Positions 37,001 to 51,018 of a stretch of 64,000 nt of DNA are shown here, one piece after another. Below the pieces are notes generated by a model. That model made no database searches and was not told the DNA's origin. It was given only the letters and a program-made list of their open reading frames with translations. The stretch comes from Ruditapes philippinarum (lineage: Eukaryota), in the NCBI RefSeq assembly GCF_026571515.1, contig NW_026863766.1:62001-126000 (forward strand). Direction: 5' to 3'. Within the stretch, counting starts at the first letter, position 1. Each line of letters begins with the position of its first letter. Made by a program: the position numbers and the translations under genes.

Positions 37001-38437
37001 TATATATCCCGCCTATAGACAACTTATTCAACTGATTCCCCAATGTCACTGTGTTAGCATATTTCAGTCTTGTATTCTAATTTGGATTTTATTTGCGAGC
37101 CTAACAATTTTGAAGATGGAAAGGTAATAAAGATGACTGATACAAAATTTACATATGATAATTCCTATATTGTATGTTTATTATTATAGCCGTAGTCGGC
37201 ATACAAACAATTTGACATAAAATTATCAGCTAAAAATGTTTAAACTTTTTACTATTTATCTCCATTTTTAGGCAGGTGATCTCAAAATTGCTGGTCTACT
37301 ACAATGTGAAGGCATTTCTAGTACCCGGTAGAACATTTAAATACAGCAATAAAACAATAAATAAATCAAGGGTGAGTAAATTTTATCAAATAAACTTTTC
37401 GAAAATCAGTAACATGATTAAATTCATGACAGCAGAATAGATTCTCAAGATTTTAAATCTGTTGGTTGTAAAACCAAAATTTAAAGTAGAGATGAATAAC
37501 ATAAAACGACGTTGGCTTTTGCAGGCTTTTAAAAATACATAAAAACCGCCATGTAAAAGCTAATGGCATTAATGCAAAACAAAAAAGAAATCGAAAACAG
37601 GAAACATTCTTACGTGATATAATTATGTTTTAATTTATTTATTTTATTTATTTATTACAGACGCCTGTGTTTCTTGAAAAGTTTTCTATTCAAGAAATAA
37701 CCTGAGAAGAGGTATCAGATGGGTCTGCTCTCGAATGCCAGGTAAGATTGTGTTACTTTCTTAAATTTTAATAAACATTAGTCTTAAATGGTACATTGGT
37801 AATATAACACAAATGATACATTGTTAATATCAAACAAAGATACATCTGTAATATTACACTCAAGTTATACATTTAAATTAACAGCGCATTACATTCTGAC
37901 ATTTGTTTGCTTATTTTTGCAACTAAATTAGCTGACGAGAAGCAAACTCTGAAGATTACAAGACATTTAAAATGTATGACAAGGCAGAAATACAGGAAAA
38001 AAAAGTTTAAAAGATGAGAAATTATTTCCTTCTTGCAATTGCGTAATGAATTTTTTATCAAAAATTAAATTAAACTTGATTTAATTGCATGTGATAAAAA
38101 ATCAATTCATATGACTTTTCAGAAGCGCATTAGCTATTTTATCTGACCTGCTTTTATAAATGATGAAATGAATTAAGTAGCCAGTCATGTGATAACGTTT
38201 AACGTAAAAAAAACATATGACTTCAATTCTACTAATATTCTTACATTGAACTCATTATAAATGTGTCTACGTTTACGTCCTCCATACACAATTTGAATAA
38301 AATATTTCTATTCATTTTTATCGTAGGTTTATTCCTCGAATCACATTACTCGTAGACTTCTGGTGGATATATAAGATATAGATAAATACGAAAATGGACT
38401 TGTAGATTTGATAATACTCCCTCATAGTGTTAACAGG
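28041..38437 (+). pseudogene. Duplicated synaptotagmin-like pseudogene (first 9 located exons, no C2B)
   Basis: Same exons as copy 1 but with CAA>TAA at 30976-30978, AGA>TGA at 37703-37705, 1 bp deletions in the linker exon, internal deletions in two C2A exons (~37297 and ~38367), and loss of the three C2B exons. Confidence 0.88.
34975..36481 (+). mobile_element. 5'-truncated CR1/L2-group LINE (RT C-terminal half plus 3' UTR)
   Basis: GVPQGSILGPLLF (~35022), YVNDM, LYADDS (~35113), continuing into ORF 35224-35904 (LSLHLGKTECLMF..SVKYLGLNID..LDYACSSW); ends aataaa-(tatc)n; absent from the copy-1 intron near 19180. Confidence 0.9.
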
Positions 38438-38649
38438 GTAATATTTCTTTAATTTCTTTTGTCAAACAATTCATCTATCTCAGGTTTTTAGGTGTGTTTT
38501 AACATAACATACATATTAAACCATATGGTAATGTTTATGACAAATTTGATGTTATGCATACTTTTATTTAAAACATTCTTACATTAACTTCAAACTACAA
38601 ATTGAACCGTTTCACACAATGTCGAAACCTAAACATGAACATACATACA

Positions 38650-38800
38650 TGAACCGGTGACGGATATGGCTTTTTCCCGGCAAATTTGCCCGCCCACACA
38701 AATCAAGGAAAGTAGTTGTTTTTTTCGCTTTTAGCAAACTTCGGATATAACGAACGGTATTTTTATGTCCCATTGAGTTCGTTATAAGCGGAGTCGACTG
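38650..38800. mobile_element. One end of a Tc1/mariner-pogo-like MITE
   Basis: Ends ...gttcgttataagcggagtcgactg|TA (CAGT terminus on the minus strand, TA target), with internal ttcggatataacgaac / gttcgttataagcgg inverted motif; other end missing. Confidence 0.55.
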
Positions 38801-38848
38801 TAATTATAAATTCAAGGAAAAATTCAGTAACTCTACCAAATTCAAAAC

Positions 38849-39275
38849 CACAGGGACTTAGCACAGTGTTGGGATAGTGTAAAAAAGTAATTCTAAAAAA
38901 AAATATATACCTTATATATAATATATAGACAAGGGGTTGAACTCGCCAAATCGGCCGATTGTCACTAGTCCAGTACATGTCAAAATTACAAAGTCATTTT
39001 TACGTAAATCATATAAAGCTTTATATCAAATTGCAGGTAAATGACATCACTAGACGTTGACAATAACATTATTGTCCCCACTTAAACCGTTTTTGAACAA
39101 CAAACCGATATTTCAGATGGAAAATCGTATTTTTGCTAGGTCGGACACGACCGTGTAACCAGTCCCGACTCAATTTTCTACGTGTAAAAACGCAATTCCA
39201 AACAACGACAGTGTATCATCCCGCAATAAATCGATAAAACACATTCAAAGAAACAACTTACCGCTAAATATTGAT
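38849..39275 (+). repeat. Left TIR (~427 bp)
   Basis: Reverse complement of 48821-49250 with about 11 differences by manual comparison. Confidence 0.95.
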
Positions 39276-39529
39276 TTTCAAAATGTTTTATAACAGCTGA
39301 AAACAACTAATTTCTTGTACGTAAAAATGAAAGTTGTAATCCGAGGGTAATCCGCATCCAGTGGTTATCACGTGACCGATTTGCAACGGATAATTTCATT
39401 GGTTGATTTCTGGTTCCCTGTCCTGCAAGGTAGGTTTCTACGAAGCTGCAATAGAAAAATGGTATAAGTATCAGATAAATGTAAATGTAAACAAATGTAC
39501 ATTGCTGGTTTACGAAAACGTAAATAAAA

Positions 39530-41248
39530 TTGTCTTTAAACCAAAAACAAAGGGATGCTTTAAGCATTGCAAGTGCTGGACACACCCTTCTTTTATTAGG
39601 ATCGGCTGGGACGGGTAAAAGCCATCCTATTACTGAAATTTGTAAGGAATTGAATGAAAAAGGTAAACAAGTGAAACTGACATGCAGCACGGGCATAGCA
39701 TGTGCAGTGTACCCCACCCATTTAAAACCAATGACAATACACAAATTCACTGGGATAGATGATGGAAGGCATGATCCGAATGAAATTGTGTCAGTATTGA
39801 AAAACAATGCCAAGTGTGACAAGATTATTGATGCAATTATGACAACAGATGTATTAATAGTAGATGAATGTTCTATGATAAGTAAACGTACATTCGAGTC
39901 CATAAAAAAGGTCTGTCAAATTAAAAATCCATGTAAAATATTTGGAGGAATTCAAATTATATTCAGTGGTGACTTTTTTCAGCTCCCACCTGTACCGAAC
40001 AAAAGGTACAATGACGATGGCACATATTGTTTCTTAAGTGAGTTCTTTCAAACTTGTTTCTCTCATACAGTAACATTAACTCAAAATGTGCGGCAGGATG
40101 AGGAACTTTTTGTTAAAGTTATATCTGATATATATCAAGGCAATTTAACTGAATGTGTCATAGAATTTATGAACAGTGTCAATAAATCTTTACCGGGTGG
40201 CAGCCTTAAATTATTTTCAACCAATTTATTAGTGGATACGTACAATCATCAGTGTTTACTGAATTCTCCTGGAGACTTGTTTGAATTCAAAGCAACATAC
40301 AATGGGAATGCAGCAGAACTGAAATCTTTGACAGTGCCTAAAACATTATGGTTGAAGCTTGAATGTCCAGTGATTTTGCTGCGAAATTTAAGTGACACAC
40401 TTGTGAATGGGTTGAGAGGAATATTGAAGTATGCTACTGAGACAAAACTGGCAGTGTACTTTCCCAGTTTACAAAAGACACAAACATTGCATAAAGAGTC
40501 ATTTACAGGTAAAACTAATATTTCATGTCAGAGCCTTTTCTGTTTTAATATTTAAATCAGTAATAACATATGTTTAAAACACATACATGCTAGTCTAAAG
40601 TAATTAGTAATTGGTTTGTGCACATACATGTTTTTTTCAAAAAAGTAAAAAATGTTGTTATTTTTATTTTCATTGAACAGTGTTTGATCCAAGGACAAAT
40701 TCAGATATTGCAAGCAGAATGCAGTTTCCTGTAAAACCAGCATTTGCATTAACAATTCATAAAGCACAGGGGATGACATTGCCTTGGTAAATATACATGT
40801 AGTTCATAAAAATATTTTCCTAAATGTATTTTACTTCCAAACAGTACTGTCTGTATACATTAGTAACTGTTACTATCTTATATAATTGAACTCAATATTT
40901 AAATTTTTATTAGTAATAAAAAACAATAATAAGTCATTTGAAATAGACAATGGAAATATTGCATCTTCCTCATGTAAAGTAAAATAGTGAGATTAATATA
41001 ACTAAGAGCATGGTTTTCTATTTATTACATACAAAATACATATTTTTCAGGCTTGAAGCGGACTGCAATGATATATTTAAGACAGGTCAGCTAGGGGTTG
41101 CGATTTCTAGGGTTAAGTCTTCAAAGGGGTTGCGTGTAATCAATTTTCACCCGAGGTACATATTTAGCCCACCTGCTGCTATCAAACAGATTTCGGATAT
41201 GAAAAGCAATGGAATGATTGAAGACTTTAGCTGTTGTAGAATGATAAG
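39530..41248 (+). CDS. PIF1-family (SF1B) DNA helicase, exons 1-3, transposon-borne
   Basis: Exons 39530-40508, 40681-40786, 41051-41248, GT-AG and in phase. Motifs: GSAGTGKS, STGIA, TIHKF, IVDECSMI, FGGIQIIFSGDFFQLPPV, LTQNVRQ, PVILLRNL..LVNGLRG, RMQFPV..AFALTIHKAQGMTL, GQLGVAISRV..GL. The start reads aaaatTGTCT (ATG apparently broken by an extra T). Confidence 0.93.
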
Positions 41249-42169
41249 GTGATAATGTTTTCAAGTTAATAAGAATCACAACCAATCCAAGCAATGAAAG
41301 AATTGTTTCTTCCTAATGTTATGATACATATTTAGCTTGATTATTTAATGGAAAGTACTTTTGTCTTACTCACCTTAGTGTCATCACTGGCAAAACACTT
41401 GCTCAACCACTGGAGTTGTGCTTATTTAACTTCCAGCAATACCATTTTTTCTAGATGACATTTGTTGTCCAAAATCTAGTATTCTTGCATGGATTATTAC
41501 TGAATAATTCATTTGAGAACTCCTTGATTTAACTTTTTGTTACTGTTCACTTTTACAATGTAGTAATGTTATTCTGGATCTTCACACTTATTGATTCCAG
41601 TATGTTAAATGTTGAGTACACTAATTAATTTCTATGTTGCTTTTATTTAACTGTCCAGCACCGAGAAAAGTGCAGCCTGCTGTCCCAAGACGGGTTTTAG
41701 TTTAAATTTGTTTTCATTGCTCTCGAAGGATCTCCTCTTTTCCAGAGAGTATGGGGGTGTCATAAGGCCTTGTTAAAATTTCTTTGTGGACCTATTAATC
41801 AATCAATTATTTCTTGTCTTTAATTTCCTTAAGTATCATTTTTGTGATTATCCTGTCTGTGCTCTGCCTTGCACCCTGTCCTGTTTTGTTTGGGGTCCTC
41901 CAGGGCTCCTTGTTGCTGGGTTGTTTGGGGGTTGAACTAATTGAACGCCGCCTTTCCATGTTGATCTTGTTTAATTATCATATTTCAGCAGGATCAGTAT
42001 CCAAAATGTTAGTGTCACTTTTACATTATCTCTCATAAACATACTCAAATCAAACTGTCTGCTTTTTATGATTATAGTTTTGTTGTTTTCATTGCTTCCG
42101 TGGGATCATCTCTATTCCAGATTTTTATGAAACTTCACAAATTGTCCTAGATGTCATATTTATATTTAA

Positions 42170-45100
42170 TTACAGTCGGATGACCTTTACATCACTTGAA
42201 GTACAGCTTATTGATGGCCTTTTTCGTAAAGGCTGGTTTAAATTTAAATGGCATGGTTCATATTTGACTCTTGCATTAGTGGCAGCATTTGATTTTTTGA
42301 GACCATGTTTTGGCCTACAAGAATACTATTTATTGCTCGCTGATACTGTAGTGCACTAGGATTTGAATTTGCTCCATGATAAGTGGATCTCTGCTGGTTG
42401 AAAACATTCTCGATAACATCAGAGTTGACCAGTCCTGGAGTGATATACATTATAGATGATTTATTTAGCACTGCTCTGCAAAGTGCAATAAAAACCCAAA
42501 ATACATGACTGTACATCTTCTGCGCATTGTTGAGATAAGAGTTTTTTCCTTTTTTTTTTTCTGAAATTTCCGTGCTATTCATAACTAAATTGTCCCACTT
42601 GGAAAAACCATTCAGCAACAGCATGTAAAGTTCCAAGTCTGTTATCATCTAACACTTTAACAGGTCTCATATCACGAAAAATATCAATTAATTTTGATGT
42701 ATTTTCAAGCAGTTCTATAACTCCATTTAATACTTCACCTTTTTGACCGAGATTCTTTTGATACAATTTCATTGAATGCAACATTTCAGAATTTAACACA
42801 TCTTCTGCTAAACGATTTCGCATTTTCAATTGTGAATCAAGATGAAAATGTTCTCTAGATAATTTTTTATGAGTTTGTAGAGCATTTTGCTGGTCCCAGT
42901 TGAAAAAGTCAATAAACATTTGCCACTGGATAGTGTAAGAACTTGGTAAAGTTAGAATTCTTGTACTTTTTGGATGAATTCCACTTTTAAGAATGTTGTT
43001 TCTCAGTTTTTTTACCACATGTAAAAAGTCCATTAAAAATATTATGTCATTTGATGTGCAAGGACTTCTTGCTATATAACTATGTGACTTATCTCCCAAG
43101 CACATGTGCATTAATGAACGGTTAGCTTGAGCCCCATCCATACAGGTATAAAGAACTGTAAATCCTGCTGATCTGAATAAGTAGACTGCTTTCCAGAAAA
43201 TACTAAATAGCTCAGATGCCTGTACACAGTTGGTTATAAAATATGCCAATGGAAAACTAAAACCAATTCCAAGGAAAAGTAATTGGAGTGCATATTTGCC
43301 TAATTTCTTTTCTTTAGACCCTTGTTTTAAAGCATGGCAGGTGTCTCCCTCCTTCCCATAATCAGTAAAACCAGATATTTCAACAACATCACCATATTTA
43401 TCAATCTGAATATCAGTTTGAATGGCCATTTCATCAAATATGACACCCCCATATCTCTCACCCTCTGGTATATTTTGCCTGTTTGCCTCAGCATACATCC
43501 ATTGGAAAACAACATCTTCAAATCCTGGTTTTTGCTTTATAGCATTTTTATATAATATTAGCAGTGATTGTGATGGTAGTACTAATAACTTGCTTGAATA
43601 TAAGAGGCCATAGCAATGAGGACTTCTGTTATACATTTGCATGCATACACCAATAAATTTCTTTGACCATCTGCGACCTTTTGGGTGTCTGCCAACATTT
43701 TTGGCTTGTTCAACAAGTAATTCTATCATATTTTCATCTGCTCGTGGAAAAAGATTCCTCACTTGCTTGATTAGGGACTCAGGACCAGGAGCATGTGGTT
43801 CAGGCTGGTTTTCTTTATTGTCAGACTGAGAAAAGGTCATTTTCTGACAGGTTCTACAAACAAATGTATGGCTATTTAAGGAAATTACCTTCTCACACAT
43901 TACAGACCTCATTGATCTGACAGCTGTATTATCAGGTCTTTTCCACAAGTCTAGAGTTATGGTATCGGCTTACATTTATGGACTTGGTAATTTCTAGGCC
44001 GCAGCAAAGTTGAATCTTGTCAACAATGGAAAAAACTACTTTTATACCCTTTTCACTTGCATGAAATGTTCCATCAATATATGCTTTGGATAAATTGACT
44101 TTTTTCCCTGCAATTTCAAGTTCCCACATGCCATTCATATGTAAAGTTATTGATTTTGTTACACCATTACCATAACTTAAGTAGCCACTTTGTATTTCAC
44201 AAATAATCTCTTCAGGGCTTATCTTCTTTATATAATAATTGTCTGGTTGACATTTAGTAATACATGTAGTTGTGCATCTTAAATCAGATACAGAACATGT
44301 ATCAATAGGGTCAATGCAAAGACCTCTGTAATATGTCTTGAGTTGTGTGCCAACCTTTTTTCTTACATTTTTAACACCTTGAATTAAAGCTTTCAAATGT
44401 TCCACAAATATCATTGAGCCAGGTATTGAAGAGCCTTTTCCAGATTCTAGACATTCAAACTTGAAAGTGTCCAAGAGCATATTTATGTCTACTTCTCCAT
44501 CTGGGACAGGTGTCAGTCTTGACAGAATCCTATCAAATAATTGAGTAAAAAATTAGATGTTGATTTTTTTATACACCATAACAAAATACAGTTGAACCTG
44601 TGATAGCGTTCATTTGAATTAAACACAATTATATGGGAATACATGTAGTAACATTAAGTTTTGCATTTCTGTATTTCAAATTGTTATGTATAGTAGCAAT
44701 TTTAAAGGCCCATCATGCTCCGGAAATGCTTTTTTAATTCTCACAAAGTTTTTCATTTCTTGCGTCCTATTATAGTTTATAAAATGTCATTCATTGGCCA
44801 ATATGCATATAAATCAAAATACTACTTTATTTAAATGTAAATACTTTTATGACAATATGGGTGATAAGGCTTCTCAAAAACCATTAATATCAATCTTATG
44901 AAACACCTGATTTCTCTTTCTATATATTTAGTAAAAACTCTTTCATTTCCAAAGCATTATGTGCCTTTAAACTTTTTTTTAATGAATGTAGGAATTGACC
45001 CACAGATTAACTTCATCAACTGCATTACACAGGTTTAACTGTTTGACCATGTTTAAAGTGGAGAAAAATTGTTTATATCAAAAATAGCATACCCTGTAAA

Positions 45101-48100
45101 GTAACTATAAGAAATACATTAGAAATTCATATTTTTTTCCTATCTGAATTCAGTATAAATGGTTGTACATTGTAGTTTAACTGGATTTAAACCAGTTTGT
45201 AAATAATTTCTATATTGTCATACATTTATATATTAACAATCTTCATCTGAAAAGAGCATTTTATATTCCTGAAACCTTTATTTATTCAGAAGACATAAAT
45301 AGAATTTTAAAAAAATTATACATGTATATTTGTCATATTTTAGTTAAGCATGTCACAATATGAAATAACTTTCACCTGTATAAAATATAGCTATACACAA
45401 CATGCCTCCAGATGTTTCATGCAAATACAGTGCATTTTTAACTTAAGATATGATATGGTAGATGTTATTTCCTTAGCTATTCGCCAAAAGTTATTTTCTT
45501 TAAAGGCACATTATGCTGTAGAAATGCTTTTCATTTTAAGAATTTTTTTGTGTGTGTAATATTAGGTCCAAAAAATAACTAACATTTTTTTTTGCTGTTT
45601 TGAACCACCTTTTGCTGTTTTGGCATAGTTATTATTAATTTTTTTTGTATGGAAGTCAAAATGCACTGTGTTTACATTTTACTACTTTTATTACATTCAA
45701 ATAATGATTTTGTTAAATATAGGCAGATTATGTATAGCTTTATACACCTTTAATAGATTAATAATACATAGAAATCATAATCAGATAGTTAAAAAAAGCA
45801 TGCATAATTACATGCATTGATGCTCTGGTAATCTAAACCATGAATTCAAATTCAGCTGATATTGTCAATTTGGCTGACAAAAATTGAATCAAACTATGTA
45901 TACATTATTTCTGGGGATAAATCTTCATGTTATATAAGCTATGGTTCAGTTAAAAAGATCAGTAGTATTTCTCAAAAATGATATGGATTTGAAATATTAC
46001 AAAATTTTTGGTACCATTTTTAATGACAAATGCAGCATATTTGATATTTCACAAATATAATTACCAGAGCAACAATACATAGATATTGATACAATTCAAT
46101 TATTAGTTCTTTATTAATTACAATATCTTATGTTCATTATATATTCATTCCAGTAATGAAACAGAGCAACTGCTAATACCAACACCAGTGAAAGCAACAA
46201 GCACAAGTATTCTCTTAGACACTACTAGCGAAGAAATGGAACTTGAGGATGACTTCAATGATATACTTGCTTCAATTGATAGTGATGAACAAGAGGTATT
46301 ACAGTTTGAAATTCACAATAGATTCATCATGAAGAATATGCTTGCAGAAATTGCTTTCAAAAAACCATTTGGAACTTCTCAGCCAAAATGTAATCTTATA
46401 TATTATCACAACTTCATCCTGAAAACCTAAAACTAGTGACTTTTGTAAAAAGATTATTCTTAACATGTTCAAATATTTTCAAAGAATTAAATATGGACAG
46501 TTTTCAACCTGGTACTTCTATACCAGAGAGTGTATTGGCAATTTTTTTTAAAAAAATGTATGAATATACACTTGATGTCCAATATACAATGGATTGTCTC
46601 AGCTTATTTAATATGGGAACAGATAATTTGTTTGAAGAAGAACACAAAATGGTTTGTTACATGATTGTGGAATATATTAGAGACTTTATACTAACACAAA
46701 GACTTGAATTACTACAAACACAAGGAATGAATGTTAATAGAAGGTTTGTTACAGATGCTTCCCGGTCAAGAATTCGCTATGTTGCAGGTTACTGTGTAGC
46801 AAAGCTAAGAAAAAAATATGTGCAAGTATTACAATCTAATATGTTTACTAAATCTAAAACATCACAAACAAAATTTAAAGAAGCTAAAAATACTCTTCTT
46901 ATTCTTAACTCTTTCAAAGAAGAAGAACATTATTTACATCAGGTGACATCTGAACCAGACTCCCTCATAGACACTGAAAGAAAACAAAATGTAAAACGTG
47001 GTCTTACCAATGTAACGGATAGTATGTTCAAATTTTTCTTGACTTTAACTGATTTGTGTTTGGCAAAGCTAATAAATGAAAATTTGATAAAATATGGCAA
47101 ATCAATGTTTAACAATTGTTTGGAGCATGTGCTTAGTGAAAAAGGTTTATTTGAACAATTTTCACATATGGTTATTAATAAATTGAAAGAGGAGACAGTA
47201 GAAGAATTTTCTTTAAACCAAGAACATATGATATTAACAGAACTTGTCGACTCTTTGGTACTTACAACTGCCCAGATATGCAGCATATACAATGAAATTA
47301 TTAATAAATATTTTATGGTTTTATTTGCCCAGTTCTGCCGAGATATCAAAGGAGCTTTTCATATTATGAAAACAATGGCTCACAGGAAGCAAATAAAAGT
47401 GTCAAAATCTTCGGAGCATACAAAGCAGAAAAAAAGGCTACTGAAACTTCTACAGAAACAATACAATTAGTGGAGTCAACTACTGAAGTACAACCCACAG
47501 TAACTGTTCAACCCAGTCCAGAGCCTGAACCCCAACCAGGGTCATCAAGTTTGACAAGTGATCTCTGTAAAAAATGTCAAAAGTCAGAAGGAAATCAATG
47601 GATTCTATTTGATTCTTGTAATTATTGGTTTCACAGAAAATGTGCTGGTTTGCATAATGCAAAAAAAATGGAAAAATATTCAAAGGAAGGAACTGAATGG
47701 AACTGTCCCGAATGTGATTGAAAATTGTATTGAAAAAACTCTATAACTTATCCAAATTTTTACATAATATAATAATGCTTACCTATATGAATACATGAAA
47801 TTGTCTCAAAAAAGGTACAAACCCTTGAGAAGTTATTGAAATACCAGCTTACACGCGAAAACTTAAACATTTTTAAGTTGTATAAGTTGCTTAATTATGC
47901 AAAAAAGCAAACCAGAGTTAAGGTTCTTGTACCAATCATTTTAGATAATTACAAGGAAGAAGCATATGAAGTTTCAATCCATTTCCTTCGGAGTCATGGA
48001 GATACCAGCTTATGCCAAAACACAAATCAGTTATAGGACTTTTCAAAATCATGTAACATAATCACAGAGAATAAGTGAAGTTTCAATCCACTCTCTTCAG

Positions 48101-48535
48101 TAGTTATGGAGATACCAGCTTACACGCAAAAACTTACCCAATAATTTCTAAGTCGAAAAAGGGGCATAAATATGCAAAAAAGCAAATCAGAGTTATGGTA
48201 CTGGTATCAATCATGTTAGATAATCACAGCATATGAACTTTCAATCCAATCCTTTTAGTAGCTATGGAGATACCAGCTTATATGAATAAACTTTATCATG
48301 GGGACGCCACTAAATGGGTTCTTTGAATAGTATACCTAAAAAAGGAGTTTCCAACTTTCCACACTGTTATTTATATTGATATAGGCCATATATACATGTA
48401 TATGCATAGAATCCTGCATAGAATCCTTTGAAATGCAATGTAAACAATGGACAATTCTTGTGTAAATTTAATGTGTCAAGTACTTTTAATGTCATTATTT
48501 CCACGGAACATACAATCTTACCAGTTTACAAGCAT
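42170..48535 (-). CDS. P-element/THAP9-type DDE transposase (frameshifted in this sequence), no THAP domain
   Basis: Main exon 44529-42170: GRRWS helix-turn-helix region, IFDEM (D1), CMDG..NR (D2), MDFLHVVKKLRNN (DxxH), KMRNRLAEDVL, NSDVIENVFNQQR (E); ends VKVIRL-TAA. Frameshifts near 43945, 42600-42500 and 42295. Putative first coding exon 48535-48522 (aaaATG CTT GTA AAC TG|gtaag) is phase-compatible with the acceptor at 44529. Confidence is higher for the main exon than for exon 1. Confidence 0.88.
46154..47721 (+). CDS. Putative terminal exon of the helicase gene: acidic linker, helical YVAGY/RGL domain, PHD finger (2 frameshifts)
   Basis: Acceptor ttcattccag|T AAT GAA is phase 2, matching donor AG|gtgat at 41248. 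It covers three consecutive ORF-track pieces (46188, 46436, 47470). PHD pattern CKKC..WILFDSC..WFHRKC..WNCPEC, third Cys replaced by F. Confidence 0.72.
47800..48310. repeat. Internally repetitive element (satellite-bearing MITE-like) inside the P element
   Basis: gataccagctta-type unit at ~47840, 48001, 48110, 48269, with aagtttcaatcca and agagttaaggttcttg subunits recurring. Confidence 0.65.
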
Positions 48536-48820
48536 TTTCGCTATGAATCAGGAACGAATTGTTGAAAAGCTGAAAAAATAAGTTGTTTTCACCAAAATAA
48601 TTACGGACTTTCAAAATTAGCGCTAAAATTCACGTGCCATGGAACCCGAATTCAGCATTGAAATAGATAGCTGAGCTGGGACACAGAATCGTCCAATCAA
48701 AAGGCGTCTTACAACCGGAGCCGAGTATTTATCTCGGACAAGAAACATGTCTTCAGCTGTTTATTTTCACGGAAGAGTGACAAAAAAAACCGAATGTTAC
48801 CTGTAATTGATTGGTTTTGG

Positions 48821-49250
48821 ATCAATATTTTAGCGGTAAGTTGTTTCTTTGAATGTGTTTTATCGATTTATTGCGAGATGATACACTGTCGTTGTTTGGA
48901 ATTGCGTTTTTACACGTAGAAAATTGAGTAGGGACTGGTTACACGGTCGTGTCCGACCTAGCAAAAATACGATTTTCCATCTGAAATATCGGTTTGTTTG
49001 TTCAAAAAACGGTTTAAGTGGGGACAATAATGTTATTGTCAACGTCTAGTGATGTCATTTACCTGCAATTTGATATATAGCTTTATATGATTTACGTAAA
49101 AATGACTGTGTAATTTTGACTTGTACTGGACTAGTGACAATCGGCCGATTTGGCGAGTTCAACCCCTTGTCTATATATTATATATAAGGTATATATATTT
49201 TTTTAGAATTACTTTTTTACACTATCCCAACACTGTGCTGGGTCCCTGTG
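48821..49250 (-). repeat. Right TIR (~430 bp)
   Basis: Reverse complement of 38849-39275. Confidence 0.95.
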
Positions 49251-51018
49251 TTCAAAACATGACTCTAAGAAATTCCGAAAATGATTTTAGATTGATGGTA
49301 GAAAAAATATTGGGGGCATTTAAAGCTTAGTTTGTGACTTGACATCAGAACCATTCTTGAAAGTACACAAATGCATAGAAAACTGGCACTAAACGTTATT
49401 CTCACAAATAAATATAAAGAGTATTTATCAATTTATACAAAAAAAACAACAACATTCTTTTATTTATTTTGTGTTATCATGTTCAGAGACAGATATATAT
49501 TTACATTGACAACTAAGGGCGACAACAAAGATTAGCGGCAATGTCTTAAAGCCGTATTTCCGGCAAAGGTATTCAAGACGTTGCTGCAAATACTTGGTTG
49601 CAGCTCGCCAATAGGCGATAATGGTCCGAAGATATGCATAATTGCCTGAGGGCCTCAGGCCCGAAGAACATTTTGGATACGATTGCCATTATTGCATTAT
49701 GGCGAGCAGCAACCAAGTATTTACCTCTAATTAATAAGTAAAAGTGGTTTCTATTTTATTTCCGACAGATTTTCTTCGGTAGCGTTACATTATATTATAT
49801 AATTGAATAATTAGTAATAATCAAAACTTTCTTTTCAACCAATCTTAAATTTTATAACTTACATTCATAGTATATTCAGAAAATTGTCCACCCTTATTTT
49901 ACTGTTGAATGTTTATTTTACTATGAATTGCTTATAAATATTATCATTAAACCAGTTTCATGCATTCTGCATCCTGTGTTTGTTTATAAAGATATTTGCA
50001 GTTACACATTACACCAGACCAAGAATCAAATGCATTATCAGTTCATATTAATCCAAAATATTACATCAATTTATTTATTATGTTTAAAATCGATTTTAAA
50101 GTCTTTACATGTACCAACTCAAGCAAACCGAGTCTGCAATTTCAATGTAAATTTGCTGTTTTACTGCTTCCGAGGGATAACATTTTTTCCAGAAATTTCT
50201 AAAACGAACAATATTCTCATTTTATAGAGTTCACTCGATGCCCTGAAAAAGCTTTGTATTCAAGAACTTTTGCAAAATGTGTAGCAGGGCTTTATAATCA
50301 ATAAAAACACTGCCTTGATATCATAAAACAATTTAATAGCGGTGTTCTCGGGGGAATTCCATCTAAAATGATTTATTACAAACGCAAAAAGTCTTCCAGT
50401 GTGTTCATTTCAAGGTTAAGCCCATTTTATCGTTTATTAGGCTTAACCAACACGTAAACTTGTGCTAAATGAATAATTTTTATTGAATAAAAGGCAAATG
50501 CCTGTGAGTACATATACATAAACATATAATACAAAGGTTTTATTTTTACAAAATAATCAGTAGCGGTCCAATTCTATATATAAATCGTCATACAAATATG
50601 CAATCGTAAAAAGATATCAATCATCACTGCATGCAATAGAAAATGAAATTTATTTTATCAAGTATGTTAAGTATTATCATGAAAATAGTAAATATCATAC
50701 TCAAGACCTAATCGTATTATTTTGCAAACTATAAGAGGCAATTGGTGAAAACAACAGTATCAATCAATAAAAATGTAAATGCGTTTATGTAAAATGTTCT
50801 CATTTAAGATATTTAATTTGACTTTTGGAGTATTTTCAAACAGTTAGACATCGTCAATAAGATTTATTTTTGCTAATACAACATCATACAGTTTTGAATT
50901 ATTTTTCGTTTTTACCTGCTTAAATCAAAACATGTTAGTAACGTTTAATATATTTTTTAGACATACTAAATACTATGATTTTACTTTTGATTGGATTTGT
51001 ATCCAGATGTTTTTTTTA

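Follow-up and report, generated by a model that had tools for sequence, protein, structure and literature searches.

In the P superfamily of DNA transposons, an N-terminal THAP zinc finger is present in the Drosophila P element and in THAP9 but is not universal. The MuDR element of maize has two genes, mudrA and mudrB, that are transcribed convergently from promoters in its two terminal repeats. Among host genes, interleaved or mutually nested pairs have been catalogued in the Drosophila genome annotation, where they are rare single loci. Here we compare these systems with a P-superfamily transposon found in a 64,000-nt stretch of the Ruditapes philippinarum genome (contig NW_026863766.1, positions 62,001 to 126,000; hereafter "the window", whose own numbering is used throughout). 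In this element a helicase gene on the plus strand and a transposase gene on the minus strand appear to be interlocked, with the last large exon of each lying in an intron of the other. A literature search found no description of such a transposon or layout.

The element resembles the P element and THAP9 in its RNase H-like catalytic domain split by a GTP-binding insertion, its 8-bp target-site duplication (TSD), its terminal inverted repeats (TIRs) and its spliced transposase gene. It differs from them in the lack of a detected THAP finger, in its 422-bp TIRs and in a second large gene, which would encode a PIF1 helicase fused to a domain that we call X and to a PHD finger (PIF1-X-PHD); in addition, its transposase would start on a 14-nt coding mini-exon 4 kb off, across an exon of the other gene. 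Like MuDR, it is a two-gene DNA transposon with convergent genes, but the MuDR genes lie side by side with their 3' ends approaching each other, whereas here the 3' exons would be interleaved, each in an intron of the other gene. A PIF1-family helicase encoded by a transposable element is also known from Helitrons and Helentrons (Rep/Hel). The present element is set apart from these by its TIRs and TSD, its DDE-type P transposase and the fusion of the helicase to X and PHD, and Pfam found no Rep (HUH) endonuclease domain in any open reading frame (ORF) scanned. In the proposed model, exons of opposite-strand genes would alternate along the DNA as they do in interleaved host gene pairs, but here the arrangement is part of a mobile element that carries it along when copied, and it has been kept in diverged families and species. 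Finally, bivalve PIF1-PHD gene models (Mizuhopecten LOC110447633, Pecten LOC117315301, Saccostrea LOC134228937 and LOC134258565) have the same architecture and are colinear with the spliced window model, although their annotation treats them as ordinary genes and records no transposon context, and they were compared here as proteins.

The whole region is enclosed by a single element, a bivalve cut-and-paste DNA transposon of the P superfamily, at 38849–49250 (10.4 kb), as delimited by an inverted-repeat search and by the sequence; we treat its boundaries as established. Its TIRs of ~422 bp are 97–98% complementary and begin CACAGGGAC, and the octamer TTCAAAAC stands directly outside both as the 8-bp TSD. 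The Pfam domains inside are a PIF1 helicase (plus strand), the TNP-like RNaseH_N and GBD domains of a transposase (minus strand) and a PHD finger (plus strand). The closest proteins to those of the window are from bivalves, with Dreissena polymorpha the best at 70–83%. The ends are as follows.

38841–38848, unstranded: left TSD copy, TTCAAAAC; the octamer also stands outside the other repeat end
38849–39270, plus strand: left TIR, ~422 bp, starting CACAGGGAC; inverted repeats 97–98% complementary in alignment
48829–49250, minus strand: right TIR, from inverted repeats and alignment
49251–49258, unstranded: right TSD copy, TTCAAAAC, from the sequence

We regard an interlocked two-gene model as the best reading of this element, with a confidence somewhat above even. 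It rests on one acceptor verified in RNA, at 46154, and is well supported by comparison, since both acceptors and the mini-exon are strongly conserved, as are the gene order and the fused protein; from the same material we infer the joins 41248>46154 and 48522>44529. Under this model, each of two genes would be read inward from one end, where a promoter-like module, similar in the two cases, lies just internal to the TIR. The left gene would have exons at 39530–40508, 40681–40786, 41051–41248 and 46154–47721 and would encode a single PIF1-X-PHD protein. The right gene would join the mini-exon at 48535–48522 (MLVN+W) to a main exon at 44529–42170, giving a P/THAP9-type transposase of ~790 residues. 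The transposase main exon would thus sit in a 4.9-kb helicase intron and the X-PHD exon in a 4.0-kb transposase intron, so that each protein would be obtainable only by splicing across an exon of the other gene. Roughly 6 kb of the two primary transcripts would be mutually complementary, and the two large 3' exons would have exchanged places relative to the plain convergent layout of the most distant relatives in the genome.

A first-pass annotation, made from the sequence alone, had proposed this layout from four splice sites: the donor at 41248, the acceptors at 46154 and 44529, and the mini-exon at 48535–48522. All four are present in the sequence as it described them. The two phase matches that it offered as support carry little weight by themselves, since each agreement has a chance of about one in three and GT and AG sites are many; it is the conservation of the sites in relatives that takes them beyond chance.

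The proposed helicase-X-PHD gene and its long intron

The plus-strand gene and the transcribed pieces associated with it are listed below.

39530–40508, plus strand: helicase exon 1, with PIF1 P-loop domain and 2B domain; start codon TTG in the window (Pfam; homologues begin at the same place)
40681–40786, plus strand: helicase exon 2, with the IHKAQGMTL motif and putative splice sites (sequence, colinear with homologues)
41051–41248, plus strand: helicase exon 3 (GQLGVA...CCRMI), which aligns to its last residues with fused homologues
41249–46153, plus strand: proposed long helicase-X-PHD intron, with the transposase main exon inside on the opposite strand (acceptor 46154 used in RNA; fused homologues colinear)
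46154–47721, plus strand: last coding exon, with an acidic linker, the all-helical X domain and the PHD finger (RNA acceptor; Pfam; homologues)
47722–48549, plus strand (unconfirmed): transcribed stretch that runs on from the PHD exon (a 2068-nt X1 contig begins at 46488; far end extrapolated)
41944–42007, plus strand: alternative exon piece with donor 42007 (AAAAT/gttagt), joined to 46154 (RNA joint in X1 and X2)
44422–44544, plus strand: second alternative exon piece, antisense to the 5' coding part of the transposase, donor 44544 joined to 46154 (RNA joint in X2)

The helicase has the core and signature of the PIF1 family, with Pfam matches to PIF1 (PF05970, E = 2.6e-26, spanning 39530–40555 on the plus strand) and 2B (PF21530, E = 1.3e-5). 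Its start codon at 39530, TTG in the window, is ATG in the copies C11405, C11443 and C6877, and its C-terminal motifs, carried by exons 2 and 3, align colinearly with those of homologues. The donor after 41248 reads AAG/gtgata in phase 2, and an unspliced transcript meets an in-frame TGA at 41250–41252. The acceptor before 46154 (...ttccag/T) is also in phase 2. The PHD finger at the end of the last exon matches Pfam with E = 3.9e-7 (47470–47721, plus strand). The transcribed stretch that follows is probably the 3' untranslated region, which would then overlap the transposase mini-exon. Imperfect tandem repeats with units of ~110–275 nt, 60–83% alike, occupy 47805–48293 after the PHD stop.

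We searched the X domain (46436–47470) against 1.8 billion representative proteins and obtained 434 relatives, most of them 450–560 residues long. PIF1 stood in front of X in all ten long homologues scanned. Fused gene models at NCBI come from Mizuhopecten yessoensis, Pecten maximus and Saccostrea cucullata (scallops and oysters), while the Mercenaria mercenaria gene model retains the helicase's end only. The AlphaFold2 model of X is all-helical (mean predicted local distance difference test score 73). X had no Pfam match in the local library, its model had no Foldseek match in the PDB, and a PDB profile search with the X region matched its PHD finger only. We also considered X as a carrier of the C-terminal domain of a P transposase and obtained no support for this, as Pfam, the PDB profile search and Foldseek gave no detectable link.

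The window was compared exon by exon with 16 homologues of the fused protein. Exon 3 aligns to within 0–3 residues of its own end, at a conserved CC[RKHNQ] motif. Exon 4 comes next, with 0–12 extra residues in 10 of 11 well-placed homologues and 36 in the remaining one; it was placed poorly in the other five of the 16. The only phase-compatible acceptor for donor 41248 upstream of 42007 is at 41834 and would add an exon of 58 residues, for which the homologues leave no room. The colinearity of these proteins therefore fits a direct 41248>46154 join. The stand-alone X-PHD homologues begin with translated pyrimidine tracts, so we take them to be ORF calls that start inside the intron. Coding sequence straight after the 46154-type acceptor, ahead of the first Met, is conserved, and the acceptor itself is kept in phase 2 before the acidic linker at seven loci, another species among them.

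Transcript evidence came from two contig sets, X1 and X2 (Logan, from different studies and presumed to be RNA), and two raw RNA runs, all mapped on 41120–47119; reads from the raw runs hardly covered the element. Coverage starts sharply at 46154 and runs on through the X-PHD exon, at a depth of 13–15 in X1. A plus-strand GT..AG joint 42007>46154 is present in contigs of both sets, a second one, 44544>46154, is present in X2, and an X1 contig stops exactly at 44544. These joints show that the acceptor at 46154 is real and that a plus-strand intron spans the whole transposase main exon. The proposal that a helicase intron surrounds the transposase exon thus stands at its acceptor and in the colinear homologues, and an intron of one gene holding an exon of the other is seen in the 42007>46154 joint, though the donors used there are 42007 and 44544 and not 41248. 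Ahead of donor 42007, which lies 20 nt past a nested repeat (41779–41987), the reading frame stays open from 41799 onward and agrees with that of 46154. Ahead of donor 44544, only 26 codons are open and none of them is an ATG.

The transposase gene and its putative start

On the minus strand, the transposase gene and the two promoter-like modules comprise the following features.

42170–44529, minus strand: transposase main exon, P/THAP9-type RNase H with GTP-binding insertion (Pfam; conserved acceptor)
44530–48521, minus strand: proposed transposase intron 1, with the X-PHD exon inside on the other strand (conserved acceptor and mini-exon beyond PHD)
48522–48535, minus strand: coding part of the putative mini-exon, ATG + 11 nt (MLVN and two bases of W), donor CTG/gtaaga, phase 2 (homologues in three other families)
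48632–48700, minus strand: promoter-like module of the transposase, with ATTGG 162 nt and CACGTG 101 nt upstream of the ATG (motif positions; putative function)
39369–39431, plus strand: inward promoter-like module, with CACGTG at 39369-74, CATTGG at 39397-402, GGTTCCC at 39412-18 and donor-like CAAG/gt at 39429/39430 (sequence)

The TNP-like RNaseH_N and GBD domains match Pfam above the curated cut-offs (PF21787, E = 8.6e-17; PF21788, E = 1.2e-5), with the core at 42575–43948, and the stop at 42170–42172 is confirmed in an intact copy (C11405). No THAP finger was matched by Pfam at E up to 1 in the N-terminal 182 residues, and the five residues of the mini-exon are too few for one.

The start of this protein is the point at which the comparison with relatives is most informative. 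The acceptor before 44529 reads ...gatag/G and is followed by ILSRL. In full-length homologues (770–800 residues) the common N-terminal pattern is [MIL]-L-S-R-L ... E-V-N-x-L-Y-x-x-F-K-F-E, and database homologues show the same read-through of a pyrimidine tract before LSRL. An acceptor of this type, yyyag/G in phase 2 before [IL][LM]SR[LV], occurs in 13 or more diverged families of this genome and in a contig from another species (L075). The first exon base is nearly always G, the third base of the split codon. There is no conserved Met downstream of the acceptor, and most families have none at or after the acceptor point; an upstream exon must therefore supply the ATG in phase 2, as the first-pass annotation had argued. 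It had also named what would speak against it, a transposase start at the ATG at 44480 or on an exon in 44530–46150. The Met at 44480 lies inside the conserved N-terminal stretch and is not itself conserved, being ATA in copy C6877. The gap between the transposase and X-exon acceptors (330–1600 nt at 14 loci) held no conserved or strong first-exon candidate or donor, and we rejected a first exon within 44530–46153 on this ground.

Candidates for the missing exon do occur past the PHD stop, on the transposase strand. In L075, whose X domain is 43% identical to that of the window, ATG + 11 nt encoding MIVN+W is followed by gtaggt ~1.96 kb past the PHD stop. A 14-nt unit lies 300 nt beyond PHD in C12781 and C4211 (MSVN+W) and 93 nt beyond it in C1184 (MSSN+W). 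Length, phase and donor are kept in all of them. The M-x-x-x-W/GT pattern had no hit in 11 control stretches of 1.5 kb each from other families, and it occurs once in the window against 0.28 expected per 128 kb from shuffles. Three independent families with the pattern in ~29 kb of eligible sequence are thus many more than chance would give. A transposase intron that would hold the X-PHD exon is thus supported by comparison, through its conserved acceptor and the mini-exon beyond PHD in relatives.

Upstream of the mini-exon, ATTGG occurs at −162 to −167 from the ATG in all five sequences (the window, L075, C12781, C4211 and C1184), and CACGTG occurs at −196 to −209 in the four relatives and at −101 in the window. 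The motif order of the left module, ahead of the helicase start, matches that upstream of the mini-exon in four families. From these motifs, the modules near both TIRs may be twin inward promoters. The helicase start in the copies with ATG (39526–39545) and the mini-exon (48539–48522) also share gaaaATG..T.TAAAC. The two start codons may be remnants of a once longer inverted repeat, although the match is short and could be due to chance.

Several observations weigh against the interlocked model. No read or contig on 41120–47119 contains 41248>46154, so the junction check proposed for this intron confirmed its acceptor and not the join. Helicase exon 3 was covered at a depth of ~1, in X1 only, compared with 13–15 for the X-PHD exon, and most X-PHD RNA in the X1 sample seems to lack the helicase. 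RNA contigs cover 41979–44954 at 7–10x and run unspliced through 44529, where the contigs show neither a joint nor a listed loose end; the proposed transposase intron is thus upheld by its acceptor and mini-exon in relatives but not by these contigs. The contigs are not assigned to a strand, and the identity of X1 and X2 as RNA sets is presumed. No database protein begins with the spliced N-terminus, and the start of a near-identical protein (P0189) is Met 44480. In 11 other families, a search within 1.5 kb of PHD recovered no mini-exon.

These points could be accommodated by three separate units. The helicase would end at the TGA at 41250, X-PHD would be made from its own non-coding exons (donors 42007 and 44544) with a start at Met 46235 or 41958, the transposase would be driven by an internal promoter in 44530–46153, and the fused proteins of other species would come from differently built elements. 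The donors seen in RNA, the roughly ten-fold lower coverage of helicase exon 3, the unspliced contigs across 44529 and the stand-alone form of most X-PHD database homologues (450–560 residues) would all follow. Yet those stand-alone proteins start with intron read-through and look like ORF calls rather than transcripts, the coding sequence between the acceptor and the first Met is conserved, and the fused gene models are colinear with the direct join. On the transposase side, the N-terminus upstream of Met 44480 is conserved as protein without a Met in most families, a mini-exon is conserved beyond PHD, and the gap between the acceptors has no conserved donor. We therefore consider separate units unlikely as a full account. 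The interlocked model and separate units may both hold, as alternative isoforms with an unspliced helicase RNA ending at TGA 41250; X-PHD-only RNA seems to predominate in the sampled runs.

Gene order, copies and signs of decay

Gene order was read from protein-match coordinates in the window's own genome. The order helicase N-terminal part and exon 3 (plus strand), transposase (minus strand, C-terminus first), X and PHD (plus strand) was found at 27 loci, including C2131, C1184, C5907, C15198, C14148, C10127, C7724, C823, C6439, C154, C1026 and C9393, and further C5403, C1826, C15117, C9423, C11812, C1339, C4211, C3089, C2708, C7672 and C7049. Protein identities across these loci go down to ~25–50%, with X as low as 25–48% identical to the window. 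A metagenome scan that left out records of the window's own species gave two foreign contigs; L075, from another species, shows the same head-to-head acceptors. The conservation that the first-pass annotation had proposed to check is thus present for the transposase acceptor (at least 13 families), the X-exon acceptor (seven loci), the mini-exon (three other families) and the layout (27 loci).

Three distant loci (C517, C7575, C4815) have instead a plain convergent order, helicase-X on the plus strand and then the opposed transposase on the minus strand. The exon-3 match lies in an open frame of 72–167 residues at interlocked loci, compared with 377–512 at the plain loci, and at C7622 helicase and X share one open frame of 847 residues. 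A swap of the two 3' blocks, each start staying at its own end, would link the plain and interlocked layouts, in a direction that is unrooted.

This conservation bears on the idea that an independent P-type element was inserted into an intron of an unrelated helicase-PHD gene, as an accident of one locus. Transposons often lie in introns, and a short repeat is indeed nested at 41779–41987. However, the three coding blocks lie together within a single TIR pair and a single TSD, and the transposase block has no inverted repeats at its sides. Its place and orientation among the other blocks are also repeated at 27 diverged loci and in another species, and short derivatives share the outer ends. 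Given that it has no private terminal repeats, we rejected a nested independent P element as a highly improbable explanation.

Copies of the element in the genome are 94–98% alike. C2131 is a second full-length copy, C11405, C40 and C11443 are rearranged or deleted copies, and C6877 is an older one. C11443 lacks 39736–43475, and 45332–47764 is inverted in C11405. Two further segments differ among copies or interrupt the element.

44703–45944, unstranded: segment missing from C40 and C11443 (common deletion); C2131 has it, and C11405 and C6877 have part of it (copy comparison)
41779–41987, unstranded: nested dispersed short repeat, resembling a short interspersed element or a miniature inverted-repeat transposable element (at least 2994 first-look candidates in the genome, whose assembly is 1.4 Gb)

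The deletion shared by C40 and C11443 implies that a deleted derivative was itself mobilised. Short non-autonomous derivatives of ~1.1 kb, consisting of the two element ends (38849–39408 and 48657–49250), occur genome-wide in more than 100 copies at 80–87% identity.

The window copy itself is probably inactive, and related copies supply intact frames. It differs from other copies and RNA contigs by 1 nt at 42490, 42549, 42603 and 43957 and by 2 nt at 46397. The transposase main exon is frameshifted at 42603 and 43957, and the X-PHD exon at 46397 and at the A-run 47423–47429. Most of these indels are in homopolymers and could be assembly errors. The A-run, at the X/PHD boundary, counts seven bases (A7) in the window and in C2131, and six (A6) in C11443, C40 and C11405. 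Neither length puts X and PHD in one frame in these five copies, while homologues from other bivalves are in frame. The mismatch may stem from slippage, from a miscalled homopolymer or from a frameshift that the whole family shares.

Such damage raises the possibility that the splice sites are relics in a decaying family that makes neither protein, and that the RNA joints reflect cryptic splicing of read-through transcripts. The window copy has no helicase ATG and carries frameshifts, the A-run between X and PHD breaks the frame in all five copies, and the donors observed lie in a repeat and in antisense transposase sequence. Recent activity is nonetheless indicated by the TIRs (97–98% alike), the similarity of the copies (94–98%) and the mobilised deletion derivatives. 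At five indel sites the RNA contigs have the version that keeps the frame intact, many diverged families retain long open frames of 500–860 residues, and the homopolymer indels may be errors of assembly. We consider decay an improbable explanation for the layout as a whole, and the interlocked model remains our preferred reading.

Other features of the region were recorded alongside this comparison. The core of the nested repeat (41940–41973, 34 nt) has an RNA contig depth above 1600 with varied flanks, and the repeat had no Rfam match. An Rfam search of 38000–50000 and a PHROGs search found nothing. Short inverted matches between 44966–45227 and 37967–38011 suggest a further small repeat nested between the two acceptors, and the RNA contigs stop at 44954, just short of it. 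Four proteins of the transposon family (P0008, P0019, P0180 and P0181) are filed publicly under bacterial metagenome-assembled genomes (Candidatus Thiodiazotropha, Sedimenticola); they are probably host bivalve DNA binned with symbiont genomes.

Implications of the proposed interlocked layout

If the interlocked model holds, a design of two physically interlocked genes would be copied at every transposition of a mobile element and would have been kept across diverged families and species. The putative self-regulation through antisense pre-mRNAs that the layout first suggested is plausible. More tentatively, the bivalve P-type clade as a whole might be an obligate interlocked pair, with twin promoters, complementary transcripts and a coupled output that is either mutually exclusive per template or self-limiting via double-stranded RNA or small RNAs, its order derived from a swap of 3' exons in a plain convergent ancestor; we consider this extension rather unlikely in its full form.

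There are practical consequences for annotation. ORF-based calls break the element into three apparent genes, and a transposase start on a 14-nt coding exon 4 kb away would be missed by routine gene finders. Under the interlocked model, many bivalve "uncharacterised" PIF1-PHD and stand-alone PHD gene models would be transposon parts. The element would also offer a natural setting in which to study how convergent transcription, the pairing of antisense pre-mRNAs and the splicing of long introns could control transposition from within.

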